A program made the position numbers and the translations under genes. A model generated the notes under the pieces. That model was not told where the DNA came from. It saw only the letters and a program-made list of their open reading frames with translations, and searched no databases. From assembly GCF_002113885.1 (NCBI RefSeq), contig NW_018408296.1:8123-72122 (forward strand): a stretch of 64,000 bases of DNA. Direction: 5' to 3'. Positions 26,035 through 63,100 of this stretch are shown here, in pieces. Positions within the stretch are counted from its first letter, which is position 1; each line of letters begins with the position of its first letter. Source of the DNA: Mizuhopecten yessoensis. Taxonomy: Eukaryota.

Positions 26035-27381
26035 CAGCCCCATCATTCGTATAATTTTGAATCCCTGCCTCCCATGAATGCTTCTGACCAAATATGATCG
26101 ATATCAATTGCATAATGCTACAGAAGAAGTCGTTTATAGCAATATAGCCAAATTGCCCCCTTTTGATGCCCCAAGGATGCTTCAGACCAAATTTGTAACA
26201 AATCCTTTCATTCCTTCAGAAGAAGAGGTATTTTAAGGAATTGGCTATATTTTCTTTATTGGGACCCGCCGCTCAGGACCCTATGGGGCCAGACCCCCGG
26301 TTTATACAAAATTGGTTCCCCTTTACCCAAGGATGTTTCAGACCAAGAATGCAACAAATCCTTTCATTCCTACAGAAGAAGAATTATTTTAAAGAATTTG
26401 CTATGTTTCCCCTATTGGGCCCCGCTGCTGAGGCCCGTATAGGGCCAGACTCACGGTTTATACAAAACTTGTTCCCCTTTACCCAGGGATTCTTCAGACC
26501 AAATATGGAACAAATCTTTTTATTCATTCATTCAGAAGAAGGATTTTTAAGAATTTGCTATTTTCCCCCTATTGGGCCCGCCTCTCAGGCCCCTCAAGGG
26601 CCAGACCCCCGGTTTATACAAAATTGGTTCCCCTTTACCCAAGGATGCTTCAGACTAAATATGGAACAAATCCTTTCATTTCTACAGAAGGAGAAGTATT
26701 TTTAATAATTTACTACATGCATGTGTTCTCTATTGGGCCCAGCCCCTCGGCCCCTTGGGGGCCAGACCCCCAGTTTTTACAACATTGGTTCCCCTTTACC
26801 AAAGGATGCTTCCGACCAAATATCGAACAGTTTCTTTCATTCCTACAGAAGAAGAAGGATTTTAAAGAATTTGTTATGTTTCCCTTATTGGGCCCAGACC
26901 CCCAGTTTTCACAACATTGGTTCCCCTTTACCAAAGGATGCTTCCGACCAAATATCGAACAGTTTCTTTCATTCCTACAGAAGAAGAAGGATTTTAAAGA
27001 ATTTGTTATGTTTCCCTTATTGGGCCCCACCGCTCAGGCCCCTTTGGGCCCAGACCAACGGTTTTTACACAATTGGTTCCGCTTTACACAAGGATACTTC
27101 AGACCAAATATGGAACAAATCCTTTCATTCCTACAGAAGAAGAAGGGTTTTAAATAATTTGCTATATTGCCCGCCCCTCATCCCTCAGGGGTGGCCAGAC
27201 CCACCATTTCAACAAAAAAAAATCCCTTCTCCTAAGAATGCTTCTGACCAAATTTGGTCAAAATCTGCTCAGTCGTTTATGACTAATAGCGATTTTTAGG
27301 AAAAGTTGACGGACGCCGGACGCCGGACGTCGGATGCCGCGCCATGGCATAAGCTCACTTGCCCTTCGAACAGGTGAGCTA
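25240..27381 (+). mobile_element. non-autonomous Helentron/HINE-type element with two internal tandem arrays
   Basis: 5' aacaagaggcccagagggcctgaatcgctcacctgg; degenerate ~130-bp array, then (GT)n, then ~155-bp array; ggacgcc repeats; 3' gctcacttgcccttcgaacaggtgagct. Confidence 0.85.
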
Positions 27382-38177: not shown

Positions 38178-39450
38178 TATTTTTTCAGTTGTAATATTCA
38201 AGAGCAATGAGTCCCGTAACGCATTTTTGTTGTGCCCAATGGTTTCATCGATGAACAAACAATTAACAAAATCATCTTTTTTTTTCTCAAAAAATGTTTT
38301 ATAAGAAGAAAACTCGTGTTTTTGTAATTGTTTATGGTTGCATCGCTGTAGCTTTTATTACACGATAAAATATTACTAAATATAGATAATTTATTTCTCG
38401 CAGATATAATGAATGAAAACCTATCGAGATATTCTCGAAATTCTATTCCATATCGACAAAAATCCTTTCTGAACACACGTGGGGGTAAAAAATTTCCCCG
38501 GCTTTTGAGACTTTCGATAGCGAGCTAAGCAGCGTGTCTTCATACCTTCTATAAAACAAAATCTGGTGTTGACAATCCGTCACATGATAATTTTTGGTTA
38601 AATGGGTATCGTTACCAATTACTGCTACTGAAAAGAACATGGATCGCAACCAGATTCGGCCATAAAAGTGATGATTTCACATACTTGAATCCGAAACTTG
38701 TTTACAACTCGCCATGATGGACTTTTTACATCCTGTGATATCACGCCGCGAATCCGAAAATGTTTCCAAAACATCGATAAAACTGATATTGTAGACTCAA
38801 AATAATAATGATTTATGTTTAGCAACAAGATTGTTATACTCAGAATATGTAATATTATGCTTAAATGCTAAAATCTCAAACAACTGACAAGCATGTAGTT
38901 CTTCGGAAGCGGAGTATAAACAATAGCACAGGTGTTGTTGAGCACATCCGGGAGCTACACGAGGAAACGTCCATACAAGTAAGTATGATTTACACATAAA
39001 TATTACTATTACGTTCGAAATCCTTATATATTATGCAATATATGCTGCATACACTATCACTGAGCTAGCCGATCGCTGATCGTCAGTTTCTTATCAATCC
39101 TATATCACTTTTTATGGTGTGGTTGCTTCGTATTGAACTGTCAGGTAAGTGTCAGATCTGCATTTTCCCGCGTGGTTTCAGGTATTTGTTTGGGGTCCGA
39201 AAACTTTCTCGTTGTATCGACAACACGACTATTTTTGAACTAAAATATTTTTTTTATGTTTCATTCATATCTCCATGTACATATGTGAGATTATTTGTTG
39301 TATTGACATTTTAATGTATTTATTATCGACAAAAACCATTTGTTGCGTATTGTGTACCACCTGCCAGTAGCCCCCGCAAATCTTACCAAGTATAAAAGAC
39401 CCTGCGGTACTGTATGGAAACTCATACACGTGGAGCACTTCTAAGCAGAC

Positions 39451-41669
39451 ATGGGAAAAAGAAAAAGACGAATTACAAAGTTAAATGCTGCAACTGGACG
39501 CCATTCTGCACGTAGCAAACTGCGACAGAGGCACTTAGCAAAACAGGTAGCAGAATTTAAGAAGCAAGATAAGGAGAAAAGGTGCAATCCATACCGGGTA
39601 TTAAGGCGATATAATATCATAAATGGCCAGCTAGTGATTTAAAGATGTGCTGTCCAGGTTGTGGAAAGGAATTTGTTCTCCAAACGAACAAGAAGATTCC
39701 TAACTCAACTCTGCAAGAAACTAATATGAGAGCAGTTTGGGGCTCAATGGTGACAGGTGGTGGACTGGCTTCTTTGAATGAAATGTTGGCTACAATTGGG
39801 CTCCCTGGACTCCGACAATCTTCCTACTCAGAGATTGAGCAAAAAATTGGGGCTCTATGGCACAACGTCCTTGAGAAAGACATGCAGGAAGCTGGAGCTG
39901 AAGAGCGTCGTTTAGCTGTGGAAAGGGGCGACTTTGATGACGGTATCCCAGCAATTACAGTAGTGTGTGATGGTGGATGGTCAAAGCGTTCACACAAGCA
40001 TACATATAATACATTAGGTGGTGTAGCTGTTATTTTTGGAGCAGAGACGGGGAAATTGCTTCAAATAGGGGTAAGAAACAAACATTGTAATGTCTGCTCA
40101 ACAGCTGAATCCAGGCATTGTGAACCCCAACCACACCTGTGCTTCCGGAATTGGACGGACACTAGTCAAGCAATGAAAGCAGAAATTACAGTTGAGGGCT
40201 TTCAGAAGGCAGAATGAACAAATGGTCTGCGTTATATGCGCCGAATTGCTGATGGGGATAGCTCTGTGTTTGCCAGGATCCAGCAGCAAGTGCCAGTGTG
40301 GGGACTGAAAGTCACAAAAATGGAATGCGCTAACCATAGTTGCAAGTGTCTGCGTACAAATATTGAAAAACTAGTGGAGAGTAGGCCTCAGAATAAAGGT
40401 CAGGGAAAACTTACCAAGATGATTCGTATTCGTCTAACTAAGGGCGTACGATGTGCAATTCGTAGGAGGTCACAGGAGACGGACAAGAAGGCGGCTGCAC
40501 GAAAACTTGAGCACGATATCCGTAATTCCGTGCATCATGTTTTGGGTAACCATGACAATTGCAGTGACTTTTGTACCAAGAAGCCGGAGAAAACCTCAGA
40601 TTGTGTTTCAAATGGTGTTGGTGGTCTGGACCCTGCTGATACCATTCCTGATGTTTTGGCGGACCAGGAGGAAGCATGGAAACAAGCAATATGTGAAGAA
40701 GGGCTTGAGAAATCACGTTTTAGAACCAAGGCGACCGGGACAATAGACCCTCAATTAATTAGAGATGTGAGTGTCCTTCTGAATTCAATGGCCGTAAAGT
40801 CTTCTCGCCTGATTGGAAATTTCACTACAAACTTGGCAGAATCATGGATGGATATCCGTGCAAAATTTGATTGTGCAAGCAGTTAACCGATACAATAGAG
40901 GGTCTTGGCACAGTCGATGCTATGGGGGTGCATTGCGGAAGAATTTTGGTACAGCGTGGTATCCAGTTGTCTGGCACACAGTTAAAGGAGTGAAACCAGG
41001 GCCATCATACACATCCCATTACCACCAGCGGGCTATTCATCAACTAGCCAGTCAGCGCAGTAATAGCAAACCCTGAGGTGAGGAGGAGAGCATTCAAAAG
41101 GAAGATGTCACACGCTACCCAAGCAGCTAGCAAAAAAGCTCGTCAAGAGTATGGTGTGGAGGCCCTGGATGTTGTCCCAGACATACCAACAAGTGTTTTC
41201 CAAACTTCACCAGATTGAGCAATCAACTCGTGACTAGTCACTAAGTGTTACCTGGATTGAGGAAAGGAAGAAAAGATTGACAGCATCTAGATTTGGAGAC
41301 GTTGTTAAGAGGAACACAAAATTAAACACAGGTACTTTGGTGAAGAGTCTGCTGTACTCAAAATGTCAGGGGAATCACTGCACAAGGTTCGGTTTAGGAC
41401 AAGAATACATTGCCATTAAAGAGTACATACAGCAAACGAAACAACACATGGGTGTGGACATGATCATGACGCCTGTCGGCCTAGTGATTGATGAACAGCA
41501 TAATTTTTTGGGAGCATCACCTGATGGAAAAGTGTCCCATGGAACTGATGAAGGGCTAGTTGAGGTAAAGAACTTGCTTCAGAGGAATCAGCTCACCTTT
41601 GAGGAGGCTGCAAAGAAGGGAAACTTTTGTCTCACACTGGTATCCGTGAGCCACTTAAACCTTGGGTAA
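39451..41669 (+). pseudogene. Mutator-like/Kolobok DDE transposase fused to YqaJ-like exonuclease, disrupted
   Basis: VVCDGGWSKRSHKH, C..C...H.C..NW...S.AM, IADGDSS, KMECANH, TTNLAES; then LTASRFG, FLGASPDG, LVEVK. In-frame stops and frameshifts. A TATA box (tataaaag) lies at 39391. Confidence 0.88.
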
Positions 41670-41948
41670 GATCCCACACCATCCCTTATCTCATAAACCA
41701 CTCTCACTTTATTTAATTTACATCACACTATGTGTCACATTAATGCATAGTTTTATGTACTTCAATATTTGTTCTTGTGTTATCACAAACAAGAAGAATT
41801 TGACAAGGTTTAATAGAGAGGGAAAACACAGATGGGGTCAGATTTTGTTTAACCAGACTAAGGGCTGCAAGTGAAAACAATTTTTGAATTAACTTCAATA
41901 TTGGATAACCTTATCCACAAAGTAATGTTTTTATGATTTTGGTTTCAG

Positions 41949-43331
41949 TTTGTACCCCAACTGACCTCCTGTGGAAACAAAAAACCAACACGTGCACATT
42001 CATGTGTGAGGAAACCTGCAAGAACTGTCAATAAAGATGAAAATACTACAGTGTGTAAGGCAACAGCATCAGGTAAACATAAGTTGATTGTAAATATTCC
42101 ATCGTAAAGTGTTTTATATACAATTCATTTTGTAATTCAATCTATGATGGATTTTACCACCAAAATATGCCTCCACATATAGGACTCTCACATCCATACA
42201 ATTATAACAATCATGATTAATCACACACGGCACTTTAGTAAAGTATAAAGTAAAGTATGTACATATGTAATTTGTACAAAATACACTAACTGACTGAATC
42301 AAAATATTTTATTTCACATTGAAATTTTACATTTTGTCATTGGGTCAGCATTTTCTTATAATTTATATGTTTTAAAATCAATGAATTGTTATAAACAATT
42401 TGGCATGATTTTGAAACTTTTTATATGCTATAAAGCTATGGAGAAATTGATGCATTACATAAATTTAAAACACATTTTCAGGTGCAAAAAGTGAAGCTCC
42501 CGCTCCAAGTGTTCGCGCATCAAGGAGACGACGAGTTAAATTTGTTGGACGGACTATCATCCATAAATGCAACAGTGATAGAAAAGGTACGCAGTTATTA
42601 AATGTATGATTTATGTTTACCAGACTGTGTTTATGACACAGATTTATTCCATAAAGAACATTTCGACCCCTTTATTTACATGTGCAATATATAATCCAGA
42701 AGTCAGCTTCAGTCTCCATGTGTGCCTGTGCTTTCTGTTCTGGTTCAACCAGTTGAAACAGTTTATGGTGATCAAAATAAAAGGCCATGGTGAGCTTTGA
42801 ATTTTGATGATCAATTCTTGCAAAGTTTGATATTGCCAGTCACTGTTTATTTCAAAGTAATTAATGTGTCTTTATCAAAACATATGCTGTTGCAGAATCA
42901 TTTTAATGATTTGTACAAAATACTCAAAGACTGAACTATTCCAGCCCCTAAAATAGCTGTGTCCGATTTTGATAGTGTGGAGTCTCATTTTCACTATGTT
43001 GGTGTGACAGTGACAATTATTGTCTGTTACTCGATCATGTTCTCAAAGTAGTTNTAACGAAAACTTTTACTTTGGCTTTGACATTTTACGGGTTCTGCAT
43101 TCAAATTTGTATGACTGATGAAGGGATGATATTTTTTTTTTTATTAATTTGCGATTGAAAACACCTGCTTTAATTAAGCTGTGTCCTTTCACTTTCTCTT
43201 TTTCATTAGGTGACTTCAACAAAGACAGGTGGTTAGAAGGGTATGTGCTGGAATGTGTTGCAGGAAAAGATGGGGAAGATGGGGCCATGTACGATGTGAA
43301 ATACAAGGGAAAAAAGCGAACTCCTAAATAG
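41949..43331 (+). CDS. three in-phase exons inside the transposon encoding a Spindlin/Tudor-like domain
   Basis: Exons 41949-42072, 42482-42586 and 43210-43331 with AG/GT ends and phase-1 joins give ...RRRRVKFVGRTIIHKCNSDRKGDFNKDRWLEGYVLECVAGKDGEDGAMYDVKYKG. Confidence 0.55.
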
Positions 43332-44019
43332 TGGAGATATGAAATTTTGGGATATTAAGGTGAGTTCAAGAAATTGAATATAGAAATGAATACTAATTTC
43401 TGTGTTGATCAAAGTAATAAGATTGTGTCATTGTATGAATAAAGACATTTATTGCATACTTTCTACATTTCCAAAATAATAATTTAATCCATGAATATCA
43501 TTGTATTCTTGTAATATTTGGATATTAACTTAAAACAAGTGTATGTTCAGTGTCATTACTTCAGTATTCGGAGATGTTGTATAAATGTACAAAGTTTTTG
43601 ATTTTTGTTGATCCAGCAATCCCGCCTCTATAGCCAAACCACTTAAACGTATGTTGGTGTCAATGCTGCATCATTGGGTACAACTTGTGCAAATAATTAA
43701 TGGACAAGTAATTCATGTAAACTCTGACATTATAAAATAAAGCAGCGTTATGTTTGATGTTCCGAACTAATAATTACACCAATAATCACCTAGTTCTTAT
43801 CAGATATAATTAGGAATTCGTTCTGCAAAATATGTAAAGGACACATAAAGGAAAACTTTACAGCTTGTTCAGGAGTTAGAACCTACGTCTACCAGAGATT
43901 TTAATGATGTAACTTTTATTTTCATATAGAATTGTTACCTAGAAAACAACCCAACATGTTTTATGTAAAACTGTTTCATTTTTCCAATTTTACAGGCAAC
44001 AGATACATGCAAACTAGCT

Positions 44020-45330
44020 GACCAGTCAGTCAACTAGACATGTCTGACAGCCTAGTCAACTAGACAAGTCAAGCAGACAAGTCAACCATCCCAGACAGCC
44101 TGTTCAGTCAACGAGTCGAATTTGCCAGACCACTCCACCAACCCCATTTCCAGTCCACCAGTGAAGTCACCCAGTACAGTCCACCAGACCAGTCAGCCAA
44201 GCCAGTCAACCAGTTCAGTAAACCAGACCAGTTGAACAGCCCAAGTCAACCAGTCCAATCAACCACCCCGAGTCAACCAGTCCACTTAACCAGACCGCTC
44301 GCCCACACCATTCAACCAGTCCTGTCCACCAGACCAGTCCGCAAGTCCAGTCCAGTCCAGTCCAGTCAACCACACCAGTCAGCCAGCCTAAGTTGACCAG
44401 TCCAGTCAGCCAGACCAGTCTGCAAGTCCAGTCCACCAGACTAGTCCACCACCCGAAGTTTACCACTCCAGTCAACCAGTCCAGTCAGCCAGTCCAGTCC
44501 ACCAGTCCAGTCAACCACACCAGTCAGCCAGCCTTAGTTGACCAGTCCAGTCAGCCCGACTTTTCAGCCAGTCAAGTAAGCCAGTCAAGTCCACCAGTCC
44601 AGTCAGCCAGATCAGTCGGCCAGTCCAGTCCACCAGACCAGTCAACTAGTCCAGTCCACCAGTTCAGGCAACCACACCAGTCAACCACACCAGTCAGCCA
44701 GCCTTAGTTGACCAGTCCAGTCACCCAGCCTTTTCAACCAGCCAAGTCAGCCAGTCCAGTCCACTAGTCCAGTCAGCCAGGCCAGTCCGCCAGTCCAGTC
44801 CACCAGACCAGTCAACCAGTCCAGTCAGCCAGTTCAGTCAACTAGTCCAGTCCACCAATTCAGTCAGCCAGCCTTAGTTGACCAGTCTAGTCAGCCAAAC
44901 GTTTCAGCCAGCCAAGTCAACCAGACCAGTCCATCAGTTCATTCAACCAGACTAGTCCACCACCCGATTTCAGCCAGCCAAGTCAACCAGACCAGGCCAT
45001 CAGTCCAGTCAACCAGACCAGGGCATCAGTCCAGTCAACCAGACCAGGCCATCAGTCCAGTCAACCAGACCAGTCCACCACCCGAAGTTTACCACTCCAG
45101 TCAACCAGTCCAGTCAGCCAGTTCAGTCAACTAGTCCAGTCCACCAGTTCAGTCCACCAGTCTTAAGTTAACCAGTCCAGTCAGCCAAACCGGTCAACCA
45201 GACTAGTCCGCAAGTCAAATCCACCAGTTCAGTCCACCAGACCAGTCCGCCAGTCCGCTCAACCGGACCAGTCAACCGGACAAGTGAGCCAGCCAGACCA
45301 AGTTAACCAGTCCATTCAGCTAGTTATCCA
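44020..45330. repeat. (CCAGT/CAGT)n-based complex microsatellite inside the transposon
   Basis: ccagtccagtcaaccag-type units with higher-order repeats over ~1.3 kb. Confidence 0.95.
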
Positions 45331-48300
45331 GCTTACCATCACAATTCAACCAAACTGCCCAAGTCAATTATACCAATCAACAAGGTGAGTCAACTGCTCA
45401 AGTCAAATTCACTAGTCAAGTTCAACCATTCCTGTCAAGATGGTTAGTCATAACTCTCAGCTTAGCATTGTTCTAGGCCCAATATTTAGTGTACTTTTAG
45501 CTGTATACATTCTTACTTTATGTGACCCCTCTGTTCATCCTACACTCATCAGAAAAAGAAGTATTGGGCAATATGGACTGTCTCTAGTAAATGTAGGTTA
45601 AACGGATAAGTGCACTCATCAGGATGAAAGTCCAGATAAATGTTTTAATGTATTCTAGCTAAGATATTGTACTGTGTAACCCATTTATCAAACAGCATTG
45701 AGGACACATGCCACCTGATGTGAAGTTACATAGTGCAGACGAATTACGTAAATGAAATATTTTACTACACAAACTGTGTAGGTAATATGTCACTCACAAA
45801 ATGCTTTTTAGTAGAATTGTTATATTTTTCTTATTTTATTGGTGACAGATACACTACACATTACCCACCGAAGCAGTTGGGTCACTTGAATTTCTAGCAA
45901 ACCAACCTTGTCAAATCAGCCGCCTAGCTCTGCCAACTCACCAGACAGCCAGCCAAATAGCTTCTACCTATCCTTATCCTGCAAGCCTTTTCATAAAGAT
46001 CTGATAACAGTCAGTCAATGATCGAGCTAGTTCAGCCATTGTTCTCCTTGAAATCCTTTCCTTGGTAAGCATATTACAATTGTTCCTTGATAAACATATT
46101 ACAATTGATCATTACTTACAACTTGCAAAACTCTTCTCCATCAGGTGTTGCATAGGGCATGGACAAGTGACCTTGTACCTAACTCATACAAGTCCATGTT
46201 TTGTGATACTATGGTAGATTTATTTTGATAATTCTTTTCATCTTCTTCCAAGTGGTGTTGATTTTAGCACAGTTGGTCATTCATTCCAACATTCTCCTGC
46301 TATTGACCTTCCCTGAATGTGTTTGTCATGTTATCAAACACCATAGACCCATTCTCTACTTAGCCTAATATTTTGAAAAGGTTGTTTGATATTTTCAGAT
46401 ATAACTGCAGGCATCTAACACAAAAGCAAACCAACCTAAGTCGCACAAATATCCCAGCCAACCAGTGAGATAAATAGCCTAATCTGAGCTAGCTACTCAA
46501 CCATGTCAACCAGTATTTCAAGCCCCACCTTAGCAGGAGTGTAACTAAGTGGCCAGTCATCAAACAGTTTTGTGTTCAATGTTCTCGTCGGTAAGTATAA
46601 CTGCAGAAATAATCCAAACTGCACTTCAGAAGGCAATTTTCACACCTATCACATGTTGTCAATTTCAACAACAAATTGGCTAATAACCCTATACAAGTAT
46701 ATATGGTTCACTGGACATTTCATTTTTATGTTGATTATGTGAACAATGGCCCCAAAAACTGTTTTTGCTTACCGGTACATAGAAAATCAAAATAGGGCCA
46801 ACCGGAGGGGAGTTATAATATTGAAAAAATGTGTTTTACTATTGTTCAATACATAAAAAGGTTTTAAGTTTAGCGTGAGTTAGTTTGTGCAAAAAATACT
46901 TTTCAGGTCTTGCACCATGGAAAACATGTTATGATTAGGTTGGGTTTACTTATTCTATGACGATGTACATGTATATCTTTCACTAAATTAATTTGGATAA
47001 AATAGTCAAGATAGTCGAAATCTCAGAGTATATCTTCATCTTATCTTTATAATGAATCATATTAACAGTATTATTAGTGATGTGTTGTTAATTAAAATAC
47101 TTTCAGACAACCAACAATTATGGAAGTCATGTGTTACAGCTATATGTTTACTAATGTGACAAATGCAGCTATCACACTGTGTAGATTCTATCTGGCTTCC
47201 TAGGCAACAGATACGTTGAACAGAAAGGCTCCTGTCTGCAGATCATAATAGATCACATGAATTTCATATACAAGGTATATCCTTTGTTTTTGTTTTCCAT
47301 AATGGTGTCGGTACAGATAACTATTTCAAATATTGTTCAATAAATAATTGTGAATTGGGAAACACAAACACAATTCATGGAAATAAAGCCTACCAAATTT
47401 CAACAATGTTGGTCAAAAACCGAGAGAAGAAATCTCCGGACAACCTTTTTAAAAATGTTGAAGAAATAAGGGGGGACAATGCTTTGAAATAAAATAAAAT
47501 TCAAATGCTGAATTGAAAAGCACAACTACATGTTGTAGCAACAAAGCCAAGCAGATTTAAAGACAATGCTTGAAGATAAAATAAAGGGTGATAACTCTTT
47601 CAAAGATTGTTTAAAAACATAATTCAATTTGGAAATCAAAACTACATTTAAACATAATGTAGTCTACAAAGGTTTAAGAGGATAGAGCCAAAACTGAGGG
47701 AAATATTTTTTTTAATTTCAGTTTGCAGCTTTGGGCCTCCAAACTTTCTGCTTCATTGACTACATGGACCACTTTCTAGCAAGAAATGGCTGCCAATTTT
47801 AGCCAAACAACCATCAGGAAATTGTGCCAGTATTTCATTGTAAATGGATTTTGAGTGAATTCTTTTCTAGGTTTTCATAGACTATGGATTGAAGATATTA
47901 AATATGATTTTTTTGGATATTTAGGACTTAGCTTGTGTGAGGTAGGGACGCAACCATCCAATAAATTTAAATATGTTCTCAGAATGTTTTGAGTCATTTT
48001 TTTCAAATTATTTTTACCTATAAATGATCGTTATGTTCTAATGAACATTTTGGTATTTGATAAGGGTATGTTTGTTGTTGTTAAAGTGAAATATTTCACT
48101 GGGTTGTATATGCATTAGAAATGCCATATGACTTATATCTCCCCCTTAACCTGATCCTTCTCTTACACAACCGTCAGTTACTTCCCCTACATCTCACTCC
48201 ATATACAACACCGACAACCACTTCCTCCTCCATCCTTCTCATATACAGTCGTCCACCTCAACGTTTCGCACTCATCCTTATAAACCCCTATGTGTGTTTT

Positions 48301-48747
48301 GATAATATTTTGTTAAAATATTCTAAACAGGGTTACATGTACCAATTTTGAATGAAACATGACGTGCATGATTAGCCTGTTTAAAGAATATTCAAACATA
48401 TTATCGGGGTATTACTATGAAAAGGACGGTTTTAAAACTTCAAAAAATCAAAAAATTTGTACTTTTAAAATGAAATTGAATGTTCTTTTATGTTGTATTC
48501 TTTAGGGAATAAATACCATAAATACCACATAAAATCTTCAACTGTGCAAACATGGCGTCATCTTAACGATTCGAAAGATAAAATCATCAATGGAGTTTCG
48601 AAATTGTTTTCTGATTCAAACCTTGTGGTTTCGTATTGGTGTTCAGAATTGTAATAAACAGAAATCCAAAATGTCTTCTGTAAAAAGTAAGATAAATGAT
48701 ATGTCTGGTATAGCAGTGATGTTCATTATATTTTAGAGAGTCTTTAG

Positions 48748-48847
48748 GTTACAGGAGAGAACGCGTGCCCGCCAGAAACTTCCCATCAGATAAAGGGATA
48801 CAAATGTTGTGTTCGCTGTCAGAAATCGGAAAAAGGAATCGGTTATG
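48748..48847 (+). CDS. candidate upstream Cys-rich exon of the LRR-GPCR
   Basis: VTGENACPPETSHQIKGYKCCVRCQKSEKGIGY, ending at G|gtaagt in phase 1, which matches the acceptor at 49899. Confidence 0.5.
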
Positions 48848-49898
48848 GTAAGTATAAAGGTTAGGGCTGGTGTTTTAATAAATCAAATCTTTGTGGATCA
48901 CATTTTTCTTTTTATTGAGACACATTATGACGTATCTGAAGCCATTGTACTCGTCAAGTTAAGAGTAAAATCTCTTGCAATGAGATACGTATCTATTATT
49001 GTGACTCCTACATATTTCGTTGGTCTTAAGCGGTTATTTTCAGACGTTGAAGTTGTTAATATATCAGAGCGAGAGCTGAAATGCATAAAAGATTGAACAA
49101 ATATAGTTTTGTGTTTGTTAAACTGATTTAAAGCCAAACAAACCGGTGAGTTCATGTATTAAGAATGCGATGTGTAATTTACCCGAATAAACGTACATTT
49201 CATATATGTATTACAGACTCGGAACCCCCCCCCCCAATAATAATGTTAAGTTGTAAACAACGTTTATTCGTTGATCTAAATTGACAACTATTTTTTCAAG
49301 GGCATTATCAAGTATCGTAATTTCAATTACCGAACAAAAAGAAAATATCGTCCAATGGTCTGGTAGGAACAGGGACCTATGTCAAGTTCAGATATATCGG
49401 TAAACTATGATTCTTGTGATACAGGAACAAAATCTTTTACCGTTTTTGATGACGAACAACTTACATTTTCATACGAATCTATTACAGTACCATTCTAATG
49501 ACTTTCAACGTCATAATGGGATCGAACGTTATTTTCTTTATTTTCATGCCGGTATGACCGTTTAAAAATTGGCGCCAATAATTAACAGTAGTCATTTGAG
49601 CGTTTGACGCAGGGGTATTCTCCATGTAATTCGAAGCGAAGCGACAAGACTCTCACTGAACAATGTTAATCTATGACGTCATAAGTAAACCAAGTGTTTC
49701 GTCACGAGAGGTTTTGCTTTCATACTGGTAACGTTTATATAGTGGATTGCAGCGCAAATGTTAATCTAAATGTATATCATTTAGATACATCCTAAGCATT
49801 TTTACCTTTTTATATGTTTTCAAACAATCTCGAGAATTAAAATACTTAGATGTTTGTATTTTATGATCATGTACAGTTGATTATGGTATTTGTTTTAG

Positions 49899-52297
49899 AA
49901 GTCAACAACTGTACGGAGACCATCTATTGCTCGAATTTTGGCCAGGAATCGGACCGATATGTTCCTCTGTATCTGTCCAACGCTGACCTAGCAGTTCTAC
50001 CTGAAAATGTGTTCCGTGGTCTGTCTGAACTGAAACAACTTGACCTGTCCAACAATATAATAACAGTTCTACCAGAAAATTTGTTCGATGAACTCTCTAA
50101 ACTTGATCAACTTTATCTGTCCGACAATAAGATAGCTGTTCTACCCGACAATGTGTTCAATGGACTGTCTGAACTTTATTTTCTTGCTCTGTCCAACAAT
50201 AAGATAGCTGTTCTACCCGACAATGTGTTCAATGGAACGTCTGGACTTTTTTTTCTTGATCTGTCCAACAATAAGATAGCTGTTCTACCCGACAATGTGT
50301 TCAATGGACTGTCTAAACTTTATGGACTTTACCTGTCCAACAATAAGATAGCTGTTCTACCCGACAATGTGTTCAATGGAACGTCTGTTCTTGCTTTTCT
50401 TGATCTGTCCAACAATAAGATGATAGCTGTTCTACCCGACAATGTGTTCAATGGACTGTCTGAACTTTATTTTCTTGCTCTGTCCAACAATAAGCTAGCT
50501 GTTCTACCCGACAATGTGTTCAATGGACTGTCTGAACTTGCACTTCTTGATCTGTCCAACAATAAGATAGGTGTTCTACCCGACAGTGTGTTCAATGGAA
50601 CGTCTGAACTTCGTTGTCTTATTCTGTCTGACAATAAAATAGCAGATCTACCTAGTCATCTGTTCAGTGAAATCACTACACTTTCACTCCTTGATTTGGC
50701 AAACAATGCACTGACTTATTTACCTGATGCAGCACTAGCCAATAATAGATTGTCTCAATTAAATATCATTGGAAACAAAATAGAAGTGTCAAAAGATATT
50801 TTTAAAGGTTTAGATCATCTTAGCAGGTTATATACTGATGTACCCTTCATATGTTGTGTCAAGCCGAGCTCGGTCGCTGACAATCATTGTTATGAAACAG
50901 ATAAACCATTATTTGATTGCTGGTTGTCTGGGTGTTCAAACACCAAAGGTGATGCGATTTCATCTTGTTCTGCTTTGGTGAGGTCGGAAGTACTTCGAGT
51001 GTGTCTTTGGATAATTGGGATAAGTGCTTTTATGGGAAACCTGCTGGTTCTATTTTATCGACTTTTCCTCGACAGTGATAATATGACAAGGAGTTATTCT
51101 TTTTTTGTATTTAACTTGGCCCTATCCGATTTACTAATGGGCGTCTACCTTATCATAATAGGAGTTGTTGATATATATTACAACGGTGTTTATGCATGGA
51201 ATGATCATATTTGGCGAAAAAGCATCTTATGTACTTTAGCTGGTGTTTTATCTAGTGTATCAAGTGAGATGTCGACGTTTCTTATTCTACTGGTAACAAT
51301 AGACAGAGTAATTGTCATAGTGTTCCCACTTTCTCGTCTTTCTAGTTGGAACATATCATGGAAAAAGGCTTTAATTTTCTCAGTTCTCTCGTGGATTGTT
51401 TCTATCACACTTGCAGTAATCCCTATTGTTACAATACAGTCCTACTTCCAAGGGGAATTTTATTCTCAGTCAAGTGTGTGTCTCGCTCTACCTTTGACAA
51501 GAGAAGAGTGGCCAGGAACGGAATATTCCTTCGCAATATTTGTTTGTCTGAACAGCAGCGTCTTTATAATAGTAGTCATAGGCCAAATCTGCATTTGCAA
51601 AAGCATGAGAAAAAGTGGTCGCCGTATTAGCTCCTCACAGAACCGTCAACGAGAGATGACTGTAGCAATTACTCTGTTCTTTGTTGTGGCCACAGACTTT
51701 TTCTGCTGGTTTCCGATTGGTGTCATGGGTAAGTTTTCCTATTCTAATTTATTAATGTATCATAATATTAAACATAATACAAGGTATGCATGTATTTAAT
51801 TCTAATTTCATGCTGAATTGGTATCTTCATTTTTCGATTTCCATTAATATATTTTGTACGTATAACAAATTGTTCTTTAACGTGAGTATGTATAGATTCA
51901 TGTGTATAAATAGCCAACTTCATGAAGCAATTTTAACCAAAATTTCATTGGTATACCATTTTATAACAGATAAAAATGTAGTTAACGAGCATACGTCATT
52001 CAGTTTAAAATGCCATTTTATCGTTTATTGTCAATAGCCCTAACAAATAGACTACTCGATTTTTCTCATATTTTTTTTAGATCGGGAGTGTTAGCATATT
52101 GTAGAAACAATTTCATAATTTACATTAAGAGCACGTGATCTGTTCCAGGAGTATTAGCAAAATGTGGAGTACGAATCCCAGATGACGTGTATGCATGGGT
52201 GATGGTGTTCGTGCTGCCTATGAACGCCGCTATCAATCCGTTTCTGTACACTGCTACAGCTATTTGGAGGAAAAGACGGAAGGTGGGTTCAGATTGA
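49899..52297 (+). CDS. leucine-rich-repeat-containing GPCR (GRL101/relaxin receptor-like)
   Basis: Exon 49899-51728: about 13 LRRs, hinge FICC..C..ISSC, TM1-6 (LWIIG..GN, NLALSDLLMGVYL, C.LAG, TIDR, VCLALP, TDFFCWFP). Exon 52149-52297: TM7 VFVLPMNAAINPFLYT, then stop. The phase-1 GT-AG join is consistent. Confidence 0.93.
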
Positions 52298-54083
52298 TTT
52301 CAAAGTACTTCTAACGATACCATTGTTTTTTTGATAAAACTTTACAATGAATGACCAAGAGTTATGTTACAGCGTACATAAGTAAGTAATTTTATGCTAT
52401 ATTTTCGGATATTTAGATTAAAATAATAAAATAGCGTATTTGCCGCTAATCCGATGTACTAACACATATCTTTCCCGGGACTACGGGCCGTATGACTTAC
52501 AAGGTAAGCGCCCTACTTTATCGGGCCTGTGAATATGCTTATTTTGTGGGAGGTAATGAGCCAAGTTGACCAGTGATGTCACAAGTGGCCATTATAAGTA
52601 CATGGCGAGTTTAGGCGTGTGTAAAATCTGATAGCATTCCTTGTTCTATACGAGAAAAGTTTGAAAAACAAGTAAGAACGTATGGAGGCACTTATAATCA
52701 ATCACTGACACATTAACTGTTTTATATGAATATTGATTTAATCACGAAGTACAATATACGTTACTCGGTCCACTTTCGAATTCAAAAAATTCCTCCAATA
52801 TGTTCGATACCTATTCAATGTATACGGTCGGATGACGTTTCATGAACTACTGTACAAAAATACTTTCAAAGCTAAGAAATGAGCCCTACAAACTCTGTAC
52901 TACATCATTGTTTAATGGAAGTATTATGCTATATTAAATAAGCTTAAGTTCGACTGTTTGCTTAATGATTTTTTTCGTTTTGTTTGTGAAGGTACCGACA
53001 ACGATGATGATACCGAAAGATCCGCCAGCAGATAAACATCATCGGTAAACAAAGTCCATCAGTGAGAAACAGCCTGCTATGTCCACGGCTGTATATACAG
53101 TTCAGTCGGTAGATAATCAACTTCAGAACACAGACAGTGTCTGCCAGTAGAGAATCAAACTCAGAGCAAAAAAAAGAGTGAATCAGTTTGAGATGCAGGT
53201 AGTGTAAGTCAGCAACGGAATACAGACAAAAGGATATCATGTTACATTTGTATAATACATATTGACTATTACTTAACCTATCTGATTGCTTTAGTTTGCT
53301 CGGTGATGAAAATGAAGAACCATGTTTTGTGAAAAATTGTTTTTGTTCTTTTTATCTTAACTTCATATGTAAATAAATATGCACTTGAAGAAAGTGATGA
53401 CTGTCTTTTGAAATTCAATTATAAGGAACAAGCAAGATTATTTGGAGGCATATACAGTATATGAAAAAATGCTTTGTACATAAATCCTCGAAAGGGTTTA
53501 TGGAAAAGAGTGCACATTTTTCGTTTTCTTTGTATAAAACTATGCATGTTGCATGGATTCGTGAAGGGTGTTATGAACAATGGTGTACACAGTTCTCTTG
53601 GTAAGTATTGTATACTCCTCAAAATAATCTTGGTCATTCCTTAATGTTTTGTAAAAAGGATGCATACAAAAATACAGAAGTCAACGAGTTCCCATTGCTG
53701 CTTGTCAAACATGCATACAACTTTATTAGTTCTCGCACCCATACAGGAAAACACAACATTATTCTTCACGATATATGTTTCAATCTTGCCAGATTTATTT
53801 TCTCTTGAAGTTATATTTTGGCCTAATTTGACATGGTGGTATATTCATCATTTTAGATACTCTATTTTGTCATTAAAATGTATTGTTTTGGTTATATTTA
53901 ATTCACTAATTATATATTTGATATTATCTTCACCGTGAAACATGTTTTATTCTTTTTTCGAACAAAGTTCATTGTGTATGAGATAGCATTAAACGTAGCT
54001 TAAGTGATGCAGAGGTCATATAAAAATGAGGTCACAGAGGTGATACTTGAAAAATATGTCGAAAATAAAGTTTCTTTTTTGAA

Positions 54084-59368: not shown

Positions 59369-60111
59369 AACAGGCACAGAGAGCCTGTATCGATCACCTG
59401 GATAATAAAGCAACTATGGAAATTATTTCTACTACATATACTATTTTTTTGCCCCCATGAATTGGGGTGGATTTTAAACATTAACTTCAGTTTCCACTAT
59501 TGAGCCCTGTCCTCTACCCTCTCAAAGCAATCCTCTATTTATATAAAGTTGCATCCTCTTTGCCCAAGGATGCCCTACACAAAATATGGTTAAAATCCCT
59601 CGAAATCAACTGAAGGAGAAGGGTTTTCAACATTAATTACATTGTTCCCCTATCCCCTCTGTACTCAATGGGGCCAGACCCTCCGTTTATACAAATCTAG
59701 TCACATTTGCCAAAGAATGCCAAAGTATAAAGGCAAAATTTGGATAAAATCCCTCCAAGGGTACAGAAATAAAGGATTTAAAAGATTGTCCCCAAATTCA
59801 CCAATTGGACCCCACCACTCTGCACCCAGAGGGGTCATACCCTCCAATTATACATAAATGAGTCCCCTTCTTTGCCCAACGGATGCTCCGGTTCAAATTT
59901 GGATAAAATCCCTCTAATGGTACATATGAAGGAGGGGCCACACTCTCCCTTTCATACAAAATTGGGTCCCCTTTGCAAAAAAGGATGCCCCTGGCCAAAT
60001 TTGGTTAAAACTCATAAGGCCGTTCCGGACTATTAGCGTTTGAAAGGAAAAGTTAACGGACGGACGACCGACGCCGCAGTTTGGCATAAGCTCCTTCGGA
60101 CCATGTTAGCC
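59369..60111 (+). mobile_element. degenerate Helentron/HINE-type element
   Basis: 5' aacaggcacagagagcctgtatcgatcacctgg; degenerate units; ggacggacg..ggcataagctc 3' end. Confidence 0.7.
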
Positions 60112-63100
60112 AAAAATGAAATCTGGTTTTAAGAAATATATCCCCAAGATTTCGGTTTTGTGAAAGAAATGAATCCCACATAAAAAACCCACTTAAGTCC
60201 AAAAAAATCACAAAACAAAACAAACAAAACATGATTTTACCCCAAAATTTTAACTCCACAGAGAAATACGCATTTGTAATTCGATTATTCGCAATGTTTA
60301 CACATGTGCTGGATACATAAGTAGGCTACATGGAACAGCTTTTGTTGTGTAGACACATATTTGTAAATGGTCAAATAGTCAACTTTATCATGCATTATTT
60401 CAAATAACTTGTTTCATAAATGTTGTGAAAATGAATAAATTTAATGTTTATATAACCAGCTATTGTCAGTCGAGTTATCTCCCTTTACATACAACTAAAA
60501 AAACGAATAATGTTGTTGCCTGTTTCAGAGTTAGAACAATATAACTTAAGCAAAGCTACTGTAAAAAATATTTAAAAGGAATATCAATCCAGTCAGTAAA
60601 AATACATAATGGTATTCACTTTAACAACAGAGTAGCTCGTGCTCACATTTATAATTAGTTGTATGCCGTATCTCATCGGACAGCTGTAATTTGCGGAAAT
60701 GTTTGGGAATTTGGGACCAGACCTGTGTGCCTTAAACAGAACTTATTGGTACTTGTAAGTATACCAAAACAAGAGATAAAAGACATATGATGGGCGGTGA
60801 ATCTTGTGGATCAAGACGTTTCAATATGGAGAGAATTTGCGAAACACAATGTTATACATGAAATAAGCATCAGTAATGCCCTAAAAGAAAAGAGAAAGAA
60901 AAGAAAAACAAGAAGAAGCACAATCTTAAGAATACACGTTAATGATATAATTATAAACAAAGCCGAAACAGCATAGAATGATTTTAACAAGGACATTTTA
61001 CATTGCATCAACTGTGAGAAGTTTTCAATTCAATTTTACTTATTCACTCTCTGTAAAAGTACGGTGAAGATGAATTTTTTTAATTTAATAAAACTTCTTG
61101 ATTACTAGATTTTGAATAGTAGCGCAGTTATCTTACTTTATTGCTTTTATTCAATTTTGCCAAGGTTTCAGCTTTTTTTAAAATAACAACTGCTTCCTGT
61201 GATAAGGATTCTTTTATTGAGGACTTTTGGAAACAAATCTCTCACAAGTTTCCTTAGCATCTATTTAAGGGGAAATATTAATCCTGTATTTCATAAATTA
61301 TATAAGGTGTCTTATATACTATATAAAGTGTACATAAAATAAATATTCATGAAAGATCTCATATACCACATACAGGTGTCATCAGTTATAACGAAAGTAT
61401 AGTCGAATATGGGCACTCGATCCGAACAAACGAGTGTCACCGGGTCAGTATGATATAATTGTATAGTTATAAGTATTTTGTGTTGTGTCTACCTGTGTAT
61501 CGTAATGTGGAAAGTACCTTGTTACTATTCATAGTTCAGACTGGGTCCTACACGTGTTGTGTCTCGGTCGTCTCTATATGTCCGTATTTGGTGTTGTTGA
61601 TGAGTTATATGTAAATTAGGGTGTGAGTTTTTAAGAAAGCATGCAAGTGTGAGCTAGAGTATTAATAAACGAGTAATACACCGTGCTAGTTCGCAGTTGG
61701 CCGTTTATCGTGAGACAGAACGTATCCTCTGGGGTCCCGCCTGCACAGCCCAGCCGTACTCGTAAATGAGTGACTATTATATAGACATGATTTTACCGGA
61801 CCTTGACAGTCTCGGAAGGTATCTTTAATATGTATAATGGAAGGTAGTCATAAATTGGAATATTTAATTCAAAGTATATAATTAAATATTGGACTTGTCA
61901 GACATAGGTATTTTATACGGCAACATACTAATTCTAGGCCATATTTTGTATTGTAGGGGTTTTCTGTATGAATCTGCGTGATACTCCGGTCATCAATAAA
62001 TTTGACTCGAAACTGTGGAGTTTTTATTCAAAAAATGTCCTGTGACACAAATGTCAGCCTCATCTTTAAGATTCGCTATCGAGCCTTATTTAAACTATTG
62101 CTGTGCATTAGTCCAACGTCCTGCTCTCGCCAATATAAGGTGTTTGTTATTATTCCTTTGTAAGTTCTCAAACGGTGTAATGGATAACCTTTACTATTGC
62201 TGTACACTTGTCACACAACACACCGCAATTGTCGTCTGCTCTGTCATTCTCGAAATTACCTTCTCTACACTCCTGGAATAGGTTATGACAAATTCGAAGG
62301 CTCGAAGTAAGCTATTTGATTTGTTTCATGCATAAAAACCTGACCAATCGCTAGGTTGATGCTGGTCCTATGAAGATTATTGTTGATATGTTCGCTTGTA
62401 AAACGGTCTATCATTATGAAGGATTAGGATGAAGTGAGCTCTATAACCGTCTGTTACAATGGGTTCTGGTTACGTACTCTCTAATGTCTCAATTATAAGA
62501 AATGAACATTAATTCACTAGTAGACAAAATGCAGATTACCTCCCTTGTCACTAATAATTCCTGAATTGAAATAAAAACGTGTCCCAAAACTAACAAATGA
62601 CCCTAGCTGTTAATAGGACATAAAACAAAATCAAACCAAACCAAACCAAAGCAAAAGCTAACAGTCGCGAGTTAAAATGTGATCAAATAGATGCAACAAA
62701 CGCCATTAAACGGTAATGTATTGGTGACGTCATTCGGTGGTTGAAGTTATTTTCATTGGCGTTTGTATCATATTGAATCACTTTAAATGCCAAGAAATAA
62801 ACCAATTGTTTTAATAGTTTGATTGTAGAAAGTCAAACAAATTCAATTTTCACCACAACATATAACCATTTTGTCCAATTAGGAAGTTATGCAGTGGACA
62901 GTATATATCAGAGGCTGGGATTAACCTGGCCTAGGGTATATTTGGGAATATTATATTAACGACAACAAGATTTATTAATTAATTAAAGAAAGGTTTATTG
63001 ATATTTTTAGAGAAGAATGTGCAGAAAAAAATAGAATATTCCCAAAAGCAATTTTTTATAGATATATTTACGATCATTTTGATCTGCAAAACTACTTGCG

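Follow-up and report, generated by a model that had tools for sequence, protein, structure and literature searches.

Why should consecutive leucine-rich repeats (LRRs) of a single receptor gene be almost identical in DNA along most of the unit and differ so strongly at a handful of codons? The question is raised by a 64,000-nucleotide stretch of the genome of the scallop Mizuhopecten yessoensis (contig NW_018408296.1; hereafter the window, to which positions refer unless another contig is named), in which a 72-bp LRR array is housed entirely by the main exon of the annotated gene 'G-protein coupled receptor GRL101'. The gene product is 100% identical to the NCBI protein of that name (P0001, 678 aa). 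The reading favoured here, with a probability of roughly 0.6, is that a young, minisatellite-like coding array lies in an apparently intact GRL101-type receptor, and that selection has diversified the groove-lining residues or has preserved their diversity. The pattern is real and statistically strong, it occurs in a known gene family, and the evolutionary mode is familiar from other LRR receptors.

Tandem Repeats Finder (TRF) detects a period of 72 bp at 49971-50652 (9.4 copies, 83% matches). In the register used throughout, the unit reads L1 S2 x3 L4 x5 x6 L7 x8 L9 S10 N11 N12 K13 I14 A15 V16 L17 P18 D19 N20 V21 F22 N23 G24, and its 48-nt scaffold was found seven times: exactly at 50189, 50261 and 50333, with one mismatch at 50117 and 50480, with two mismatches at 50552, and with a 3-nt insertion at approximately 50405. 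With units some tens of bases long, arranged head to tail and almost identical, the array resembles a coding minisatellite. Its parts are as follows:

49949 to 50815, forward strand: whole LRR array, in which a cap-proximal unit is followed by 11 more, all of 24 residues except one of 25, cut in register L1-G24 and regular in the AlphaFold2 strand pattern.
50093 to 50599, forward strand: seven core near-identical 72-bp units (one of 75 bp), with codons 9-24 alike at 42-45 of 45 letters in all pairs and variation in codons 1, 3, 5, 6 and 8.
50420 to 50422, forward strand: in-frame 3-nt insertion, an added ATG codon (NNKMIAVLP) by which one repeat reaches 25 residues.
50600 to 50626, forward strand: variable half of an eighth unit (TSELRCLIL), the scaffold half of which has already diverged (SDNKIADLPSHLFSE).

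The initial annotation, made from the letters of the window, had described near-identical modular LRR scaffolds with variable codons, consecutive 24-residue LRRs in one exon and one in-frame 3-bp insertion. The first of these is borne out by TRF, the seven scaffold matches and the codon counts, the second by the position of the entire array inside 49899-51728, and the third by the ATG at 50420-50422 (AAG ATG ATA versus AAG ATA). The six variable segments it listed (ELYFLAL, GLFFLDL, KLYGLYL, VLAFLDL, ELALLDL and ELRCLIL) are all present in that order; ELYFLAL occurs twice, and an extra unit, KLDQLYL, precedes them. A 291-bp higher-order period, also proposed by TRF, was rejected, as the duplication of a single unit (ELYFLAL, 50165 and 50456), not of a four-unit block, accounts for it. 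At position 1 of the units at 50237, 50381 and 50600, Thr (ACG) replaces Leu (CTG), two letters apart, creating N-G-T glycosylation sequons on alternate units.

Substitutions, which would be spread evenly across the unit if nothing distinguished its positions, are instead concentrated in codons 1, 3, 5, 6 and 8. The variable nucleotide columns of the 72-nt unit are 1-3, 7-9, 13-18 and 22-24, together with four singletons, a clustering far beyond chance. Among the seven core units the proportion of nonsynonymous differences (pN) is 0.49 at these five codons and 0.027 at the other 19 (four singleton replacements), where 310 pairwise synonymous sites contain no synonymous difference. The codons for S2 (TCT), L4 (CTT), L7 (CTT) and L9 (CTG), which are interleaved with the variable ones, are constant in the core units, fourfold sites included, and this argues against the variable stretch being merely old.

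In an AlphaFold2 model (mean predicted local distance difference test score 76, approximately 90 in the repeats), every long beta-strand (such as residues 44-49 and 68-73) coincides with unit positions 3-8. The proposal of the initial annotation that the variable positions form the concave face holds for positions 5, 6 and 8, which are canonical in the xxLxLxx motif and lie within the predicted strand; it fits less well for position 3, which falls just before the motif, and the canonical concave positions 10 and 11 are fixed here as S10 and N11. Diversity on the concave beta-strand residues of 24-residue modules, as in the variable lymphocyte receptors (VLRs) of lampreys and hagfish, is thus found in both the codon counts and the AlphaFold2 model.

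The favoured reading would explain these features by treating the 72-bp LRR module as a coding minisatellite, of which the tandem copying was very recent or the likeness has been kept by unequal crossing-over and gene conversion, either of which would leave the scaffold codons identical down to silent sites. Replacement of residues 3, 5, 6 and 8, together with the Leu/Thr switch at position 1, would have far outpaced change at neutral sites. Positions 3-8 would form the beta-strand lining the concave groove, and seven to eight successive repeats with variable strand positions would present a patch of approximately 30 diversified side chains. The driving force would be selection for new or different binding specificities, aided by exchange of whole units, in a receptor that may signal via its rhodopsin-type seven-transmembrane (7TM) domain. 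Diversifying selection is the most likely cause of the replacement pattern. The initial annotation had coupled it with homogenisation of the scaffold; the data agree with a young or homogenised scaffold on which the binding-face codons have diversified, but they do not separate homogenisation from young amplification.

The same contrast appears when the units of sister arrays are pooled. A six-frame search of the scallop's own genome found at least 15 loci with LRRs and a 7TM domain, with arrays that vary from some ten diverged repeats up to dozens that are nearly identical, but the unit type of the window occurs at only four places in the 988-Mb genome: the window, contigs C4470 and C736, and a 305-base contig, C38841, with C736-type units. 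Changes on a minimum-spanning tree of 64 unique units give a ratio of nonsynonymous to synonymous rates (N/S) of approximately 3.6 at positions 3, 5, 6 and 8, 0.42 at the structural core and 2.2 at other surface positions, figures obtained by counting methods, in which unit recombination inflates tree counts at polymorphic sites, and not by a recombination-aware likelihood model. In the same 64 units, replacements at codons 3, 5, 6 and 8 number 88, whereas silent changes over the entire unit number 42 (binomial p approximately 1e-12), and a neighbour-joining tree with parsimony counting ranks the classes of positions in the same way. By these counts the replacement rate exceeds the silent rate at exposed strand positions and falls below it at structural ones, as expected of diversifying selection. 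Third-position diversity in 65 pooled units is 0.00-0.17 at S2, L4, L7 and L9, versus 0.2-0.7 at the variable codons.

A decayed array in the same family provides a neutral control. At C3085:179263-185622 (L028-L030) there are at least 83 units of the family's 72-bp module in 6.4 kb, with twelve spacings of 71 bp and with stop codons. Diversity in this array is spread across the unit and is highest at codons 15 and 12, with no peak at 3, 5, 6 and 8, and the codons of the structural Asn (N12) and of Leu residues are altered as well. Mutation alone is thus insufficient to produce the pattern of the window. A mutational hotspot at codons 3, 5, 6 and 8, considered as a cause, was rejected because these codons are not the variable ones in this dead array of the same family.

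Comparison with the sister copies indicates that the internal units have turned over. Approximately 43 kb of the window (16956-59595) is colinear with the nearest copy, C4470 683077-713153, and substitutions outside the array, in flanks and introns, amount to 152 of 4000 (3.8%). When internal units 2-8 are compared position by position, 45 of 105 letters differ in the variable codons (43%) and 22 of 399 in the remaining array codons (5.5%), so that, regardless of events within each array, change at the binding-face codons has been roughly ten times as fast as in the rest. The two arrays, similar in length, correspond in nothing but the cap, the initial unit and a single internal cassette, KLYGLYL, which is identical letter for letter in C4470 at a different position of the array. 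The comparison of repeat content among alleles or paralogues that the initial annotation had called for, carried out in part, thus reveals a difference in nearly all internal cassettes. The assembled C4470 copy has a frame break between array and hinge and a G-to-D change at a conserved site. Approximately 10 kb at window 38179-48145 is absent from the colinear part of C4470 (701219 to 701500), which fits a transposon insertion.

The second sister gene, at C736:402460-408552 (L002, L019-L026), has approximately 75 LRR units in one stretch. Its frame breaks at about 405045-405295 and 405990-406144, and an invariant Cys of the hinge has become Trp (DAISSC to DAISSW). A pseudogene is the probable explanation, or else poor assembly of the array. 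Scaffold variants are specific to arrays, with Y20/S23 in C736, Q13/M21 in C4470 and none in the window. A segment downstream of the window gene (59600-61440) recurs at least six times on C736 (418-448 kb, 85-88% identity), indicating that the C736 region has undergone further local duplications.

Arrays have also been amplified independently elsewhere in the family. A paralogue at C76734:869640-874586 (L003, L025) has one open frame of more than 1150 aa with approximately 23 near-identical LRRs (LSALTxLxLxxNQIVALPDDVFNG), which vary at positions 6, 8, 10 and 11, a different subset of the concave face from that of the window gene. The Ylistrum balloti homologue P0010 has an independently amplified array with variable positions 5, 6 and 8 on a constant scaffold, as judged from the amino-acid pattern. 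The database matches that follow P0001 are GRL101-like or relaxin receptor 2-like proteins of other scallops (54-63% identical), among which no close orthologue was found, the best match being 63% identical.

The window copy is the most intact of the trio formed with C4470 and C736. Its open frame at 49850-51799 encodes eight LRR_8 stretches and a rhodopsin-type 7TM domain (Pfam LRR_8, 2.5e-59; 7tm_1, 1.4e-21), and P0001 matches 7tm_1 over model positions 1-260 of 260 (E 1.7e-24) and LRR_8 in 8 stretches (E 4e-59). The reading frame remains open across all exons, and from its sequence the gene apparently encodes an intact GRL101-like receptor, composed as follows:

48748 to 48843 (approximate limits), forward strand: upstream cysteine-rich exon, reading ...ACPPETSHQIKGYKCCVRCQKSEKGIG, located by tblastn with the N-termini of the scallop homologues P0002, P0004 and P0008 (E down to 6e-6) and by translation.
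49899 to 51728, forward strand: main exon, with the LRR ectodomain, the cysteine-rich hinge and transmembrane helices (TM) 1-6, between acceptor AG 49897-49898 and donor GT 51729-51730.
50831 to 50985, forward strand: cysteine-rich hinge, or C-terminal LRR cap (YTDVPFICCVKP...DAISSC), conserved in the alignment with paralogues and other scallops.
50986 to 51728, forward strand: TM1-TM6 of the rhodopsin class, by Pfam 7tm_1.
52149 to 52282, forward strand: TM7 exon (NAAINPFLY, the NPxxY motif), by splice sites and agreement with P0001.
52992 to 53048, forward strand: last coding exon (VPTTMMIPKDPPADKHHR; stop at 53046-53048), by splice sites and agreement with P0001.

The surroundings of the gene are eukaryotic in character, AT-rich and rich in transposons, with a run of N at approximately 250-900; the assembly is a short-read assembly of 988 Mb in 82,659 contigs. 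No second LRR array was found within the window. Two other repeat regions were noted: a G+C-rich (49%) low-complexity array at 44149-45277, built of approximately 86 copies of a 13-bp unit (TCCAGTCAACCAG) with higher-order periods, and tandem repeats of 156 and 132 bp at 26170-27300, which have long overlapping open frames and one pair of copies that are 98% alike.

Several observations weigh against the favoured reading, beyond the effect of recombination on the tree counts. Many variable codons differ by two or three letters while silent sites show zero change, so that point mutation and selection alone fit poorly, and some cassettes are therefore older than the scaffold or were brought in by unit exchange; exchange of units and homogenisation of the scaffold probably contribute to the pattern. 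The 7TM exon, compared with C4470 and C736, has a ratio of nonsynonymous to synonymous divergence (dN/dS) of approximately 1 and has diverged as much as the introns (from C4470, 2.6% in the exon and 2.6-5.6% in the introns), which indicates weak constraint on the trio, although much of the decay sits in the two broken copies. Only three RNA reads were found in approximately 1.9 billion letters (RNA run X23), all with C4470-type letters. Finally, with a word size (k=31) shorter than the shared 48-nt scaffold, public contigs break off within the array, and the reads leave the order and number of the units unconfirmed.

The first of these objections is the main ground for concerted evolution without positive selection, in which old cassettes were retained and reshuffled while the scaffold was homogenised by conversion and crossing-over bounded in a 48-nt stretch, so that the contrast would be one of different ages. 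Besides multi-letter differences within single codons beside zero silent change, it would account for the array-specific scaffold variants (Y20/S23 and Q13/M21) as within-array spreading, for the KLYGLYL cassette shared with C4470 at another array position, and for window cassettes that are 2 letters from C736 cassettes. However, S2, L4, L7 and L9 are interleaved with the variable codons and are free of silent differences in the window and nearly so in the 65 pooled units, and conversion tracts cannot skip single codons. Other subfamilies use CTG and CTC at L7, so that CTT is not forced there, and keeping diversity against homogenisation would itself require selection. Concerted evolution alone is a possible account of the array but an unlikely one.

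A bolder interpretation is that the window and C4470 are haplotypes of one locus, the two belonging to an allelic series of GRL101-type G-protein coupled receptors (GPCRs) in which the groove is rewritten by minisatellite-like unit exchange and by selection on four codons per repeat. The product would be a germline-encoded receptor, variable at the level of the population and coupled to G-protein signalling, which might recognise pathogens, food or toxic algae, or conspecific cues. Public sequence data were placed on 48500-53300 (4801 letters). Contigs of DNA run X3 have the window's own letter at 0 of 40 variant places and the C4470 base at 36 of 40; run X6 is mostly C4470-type, with nine window-type places, and run X15 is mostly window-type. 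At 50925-52220, runs X3, X6, X15 and X23 have window-type or C4470-type letters per animal, apparently not both, which suits either two haplotypes of one locus or a young, unfixed duplicate. Two observations weigh against simple allelism: the right end of the window (59.6-64 kb) matches C736 and not C4470, and both copies are located in large scaffolds. An allelic series of this kind is doubtful.

The RNA reads are of C4470 type although the assembled C4470 copy has a frame break, and some runs initially taken for RNA extend over introns and probably consist of DNA. Scarcity of RNA, a 7TM exon with dN/dS of approximately 1 that has diverged like the introns, two broken sister copies (C4470 and C736) and the existence of dead arrays in the family (C3085) would all suit neutral decay, by which a young duplicate is becoming a pseudogene and its array is a coding minisatellite with functionless variants. 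This is improbable, as the frame is open through all exons, the structural LRR residues are intact with all changes except four on the beta-strand surface codons, the dead C3085 array has the opposite distribution of diversity, and the window-specific changes in the 7TM domain are few and conservative.

An assembly artefact, in which the short-read assembler threaded reads of similar arrays or haplotypes through the 48-nt scaffold to give a chimeric order or number of units, is no more credible. The scaffold is longer than usual k-mers, the unplaced mini-contigs C38841, C51283 and C65187 hold pieces of sister arrays, and in addition to the breaks in public contigs, coverage by runs X6 and X15 is missing at 50432-50592, which may reflect a gap in the data or a true difference. 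Yet the frame remains open, 6 of the 7 cassettes are unique to the window array and the mini-contigs are of other array types, a 194-nt contig from another animal spans 49960-50153 with a single mismatch, all bins of the array are covered in run X3, and a codon-specific pattern would outlast a wrong order of units.

The term 'VLR-like' used by the initial annotation is apt as an analogy of surface design, a modular scaffold with variable concave residues, but not of mechanism: that an incomplete germline gene is completed somatically from flanking LRR cassettes is extremely unlikely, since the gene is complete in the germline and fused to a 7TM domain instead of a stalk, no other LRR cassettes lie in the 64-kb window and no cassette field surrounds the gene, no donor cassettes were found in the genome beyond the sister arrays, which account for all four places of the unit type, and no joints were seen in two DNA runs, one uncertain run and one RNA run (contigs broken in the array, RNA depth of 3 reads).

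In its overall architecture the window gene resembles GRL101 of Lymnaea stagnalis, to our knowledge an orphan receptor, and the type C leucine-rich repeat-containing GPCRs (LGRs; the relaxin-receptor relatives RXFP1/2 and Drosophila Lgr3/4), with which it shares an LRR ectodomain, a cysteine-rich hinge and a rhodopsin-class 7TM domain. The hinge of the window gene is recognisable as CCVKP...DAISSC, conserved in paralogues and other scallops, and a Foldseek search with the ectodomain model returned generic LRR ectodomains, with LGR5 and LGR4 at the top. The LDLa module (PF00057, E 0.01 or less) was found in none of P0001, paralogue L005 and Pecten P0004, the upstream exon showing a conserved Cys motif only, whereas more distant relatives in Mytilus, Tegillarca and Lymnaea carry PF00057. 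The LRRs of the window gene differ from the conserved hormone-binding repeats of type C LGRs in being a young, internally near-identical array with hypervariable strand codons.

Expanded GRL101-like families are known from apple snails (29-132 genes, with tentacle expression; PMC6573481), and in Biomphalaria sudanica the haplotype-variable GRL101-like cluster SudRes2 is linked to schistosome resistance (PMC12297450). Expression in sensory organs is reported from Charonia (tentacle-specific, PMC13403566) and a sea star (PMC6267866), and chemosensory or immune roles have been proposed for GRL101-like receptors in the snails and the sea star (PMC6573481, PMC12297450, PMC13403566, PMC6267866). The chemosensory or immune role that the initial annotation suggested for the window receptor is a putative one. 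The scallop family is like the snail expansions in its lineage-specific multiplication of LRR-GPCRs and in structural differences between haplotypes or copies, to which a sensing of outside cues, proposed for the snails, would correspond. The snail papers deal with the growth in gene number, with added C-type lectin or LDLa domains and with expression. In the literature searched, no description was found of hypervariability at the level of single repeats on the LRR face of GRL101-like receptors.

Among other LRR systems, the VLRs of lampreys and hagfish likewise have 24-residue LRR modules with a common scaffold and with diversity on concave beta-strand residues. A VLR gene is left incomplete in the germline, and lymphocytes assemble it from donor cassettes that number in the hundreds (PMC12264053, PMC11160967). 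The scallop gene, in contrast, is complete and germline-encoded, without a cassette field, and encodes a GPCR. In plant nucleotide-binding LRR proteins, Cf-type receptors and polygalacturonase-inhibiting proteins (PGIPs), diversifying selection acts on the exposed residues of xxLxLxx, and unequal crossing-over alters the number of repeats. An excess of replacements at exposed strand residues, intragenic LRR duplication and birth-and-death evolution of gene copies are documented for plant resistance proteins and PGIPs (for example, PMC6771003, PMC3113787). The scallop array differs from those of plant resistance proteins in belonging to an animal GPCR, in its shifted set of variable positions (3, 5, 6 and 8, with 10 and 11 fixed) and in its nucleotide-identical scaffold. 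The candidate LRR-ROCO and NB-ARC-TPR receptors of Ectocarpus have shuffled 72-bp repeat exons (PMC3341825). Those repeats are similar in combining a uniform scaffold with a few hypervariable positions but are single exons shuffled by recombination, whereas the scallop units lie in one exon. A uniform scaffold on which a few hypervariable positions form the binding surface is also the principle of transcription activator-like (TAL) effector repeats, which read DNA, and of man-made designed binders such as repebodies and designed ankyrin repeat proteins (DARPins).

Bivalves are known for large haplotype differences, and if the differences between the sister copies are allelic, the GRL101-type array of M. 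yessoensis would represent a case of extreme polymorphism of a bivalve receptor; if they are not, it would be a tidy, ordinary case of LRR receptor evolution. We know of no ligand for the GRL101-like receptors, which have multiplied in several molluscs, and of no statement as to where their specificity is seated. The window array suggests that specificity is determined by a face made of four positions per repeat, and it offers a compact natural 'library' of approximately 30 residues on an otherwise constant scaffold, open to swapping and assay.

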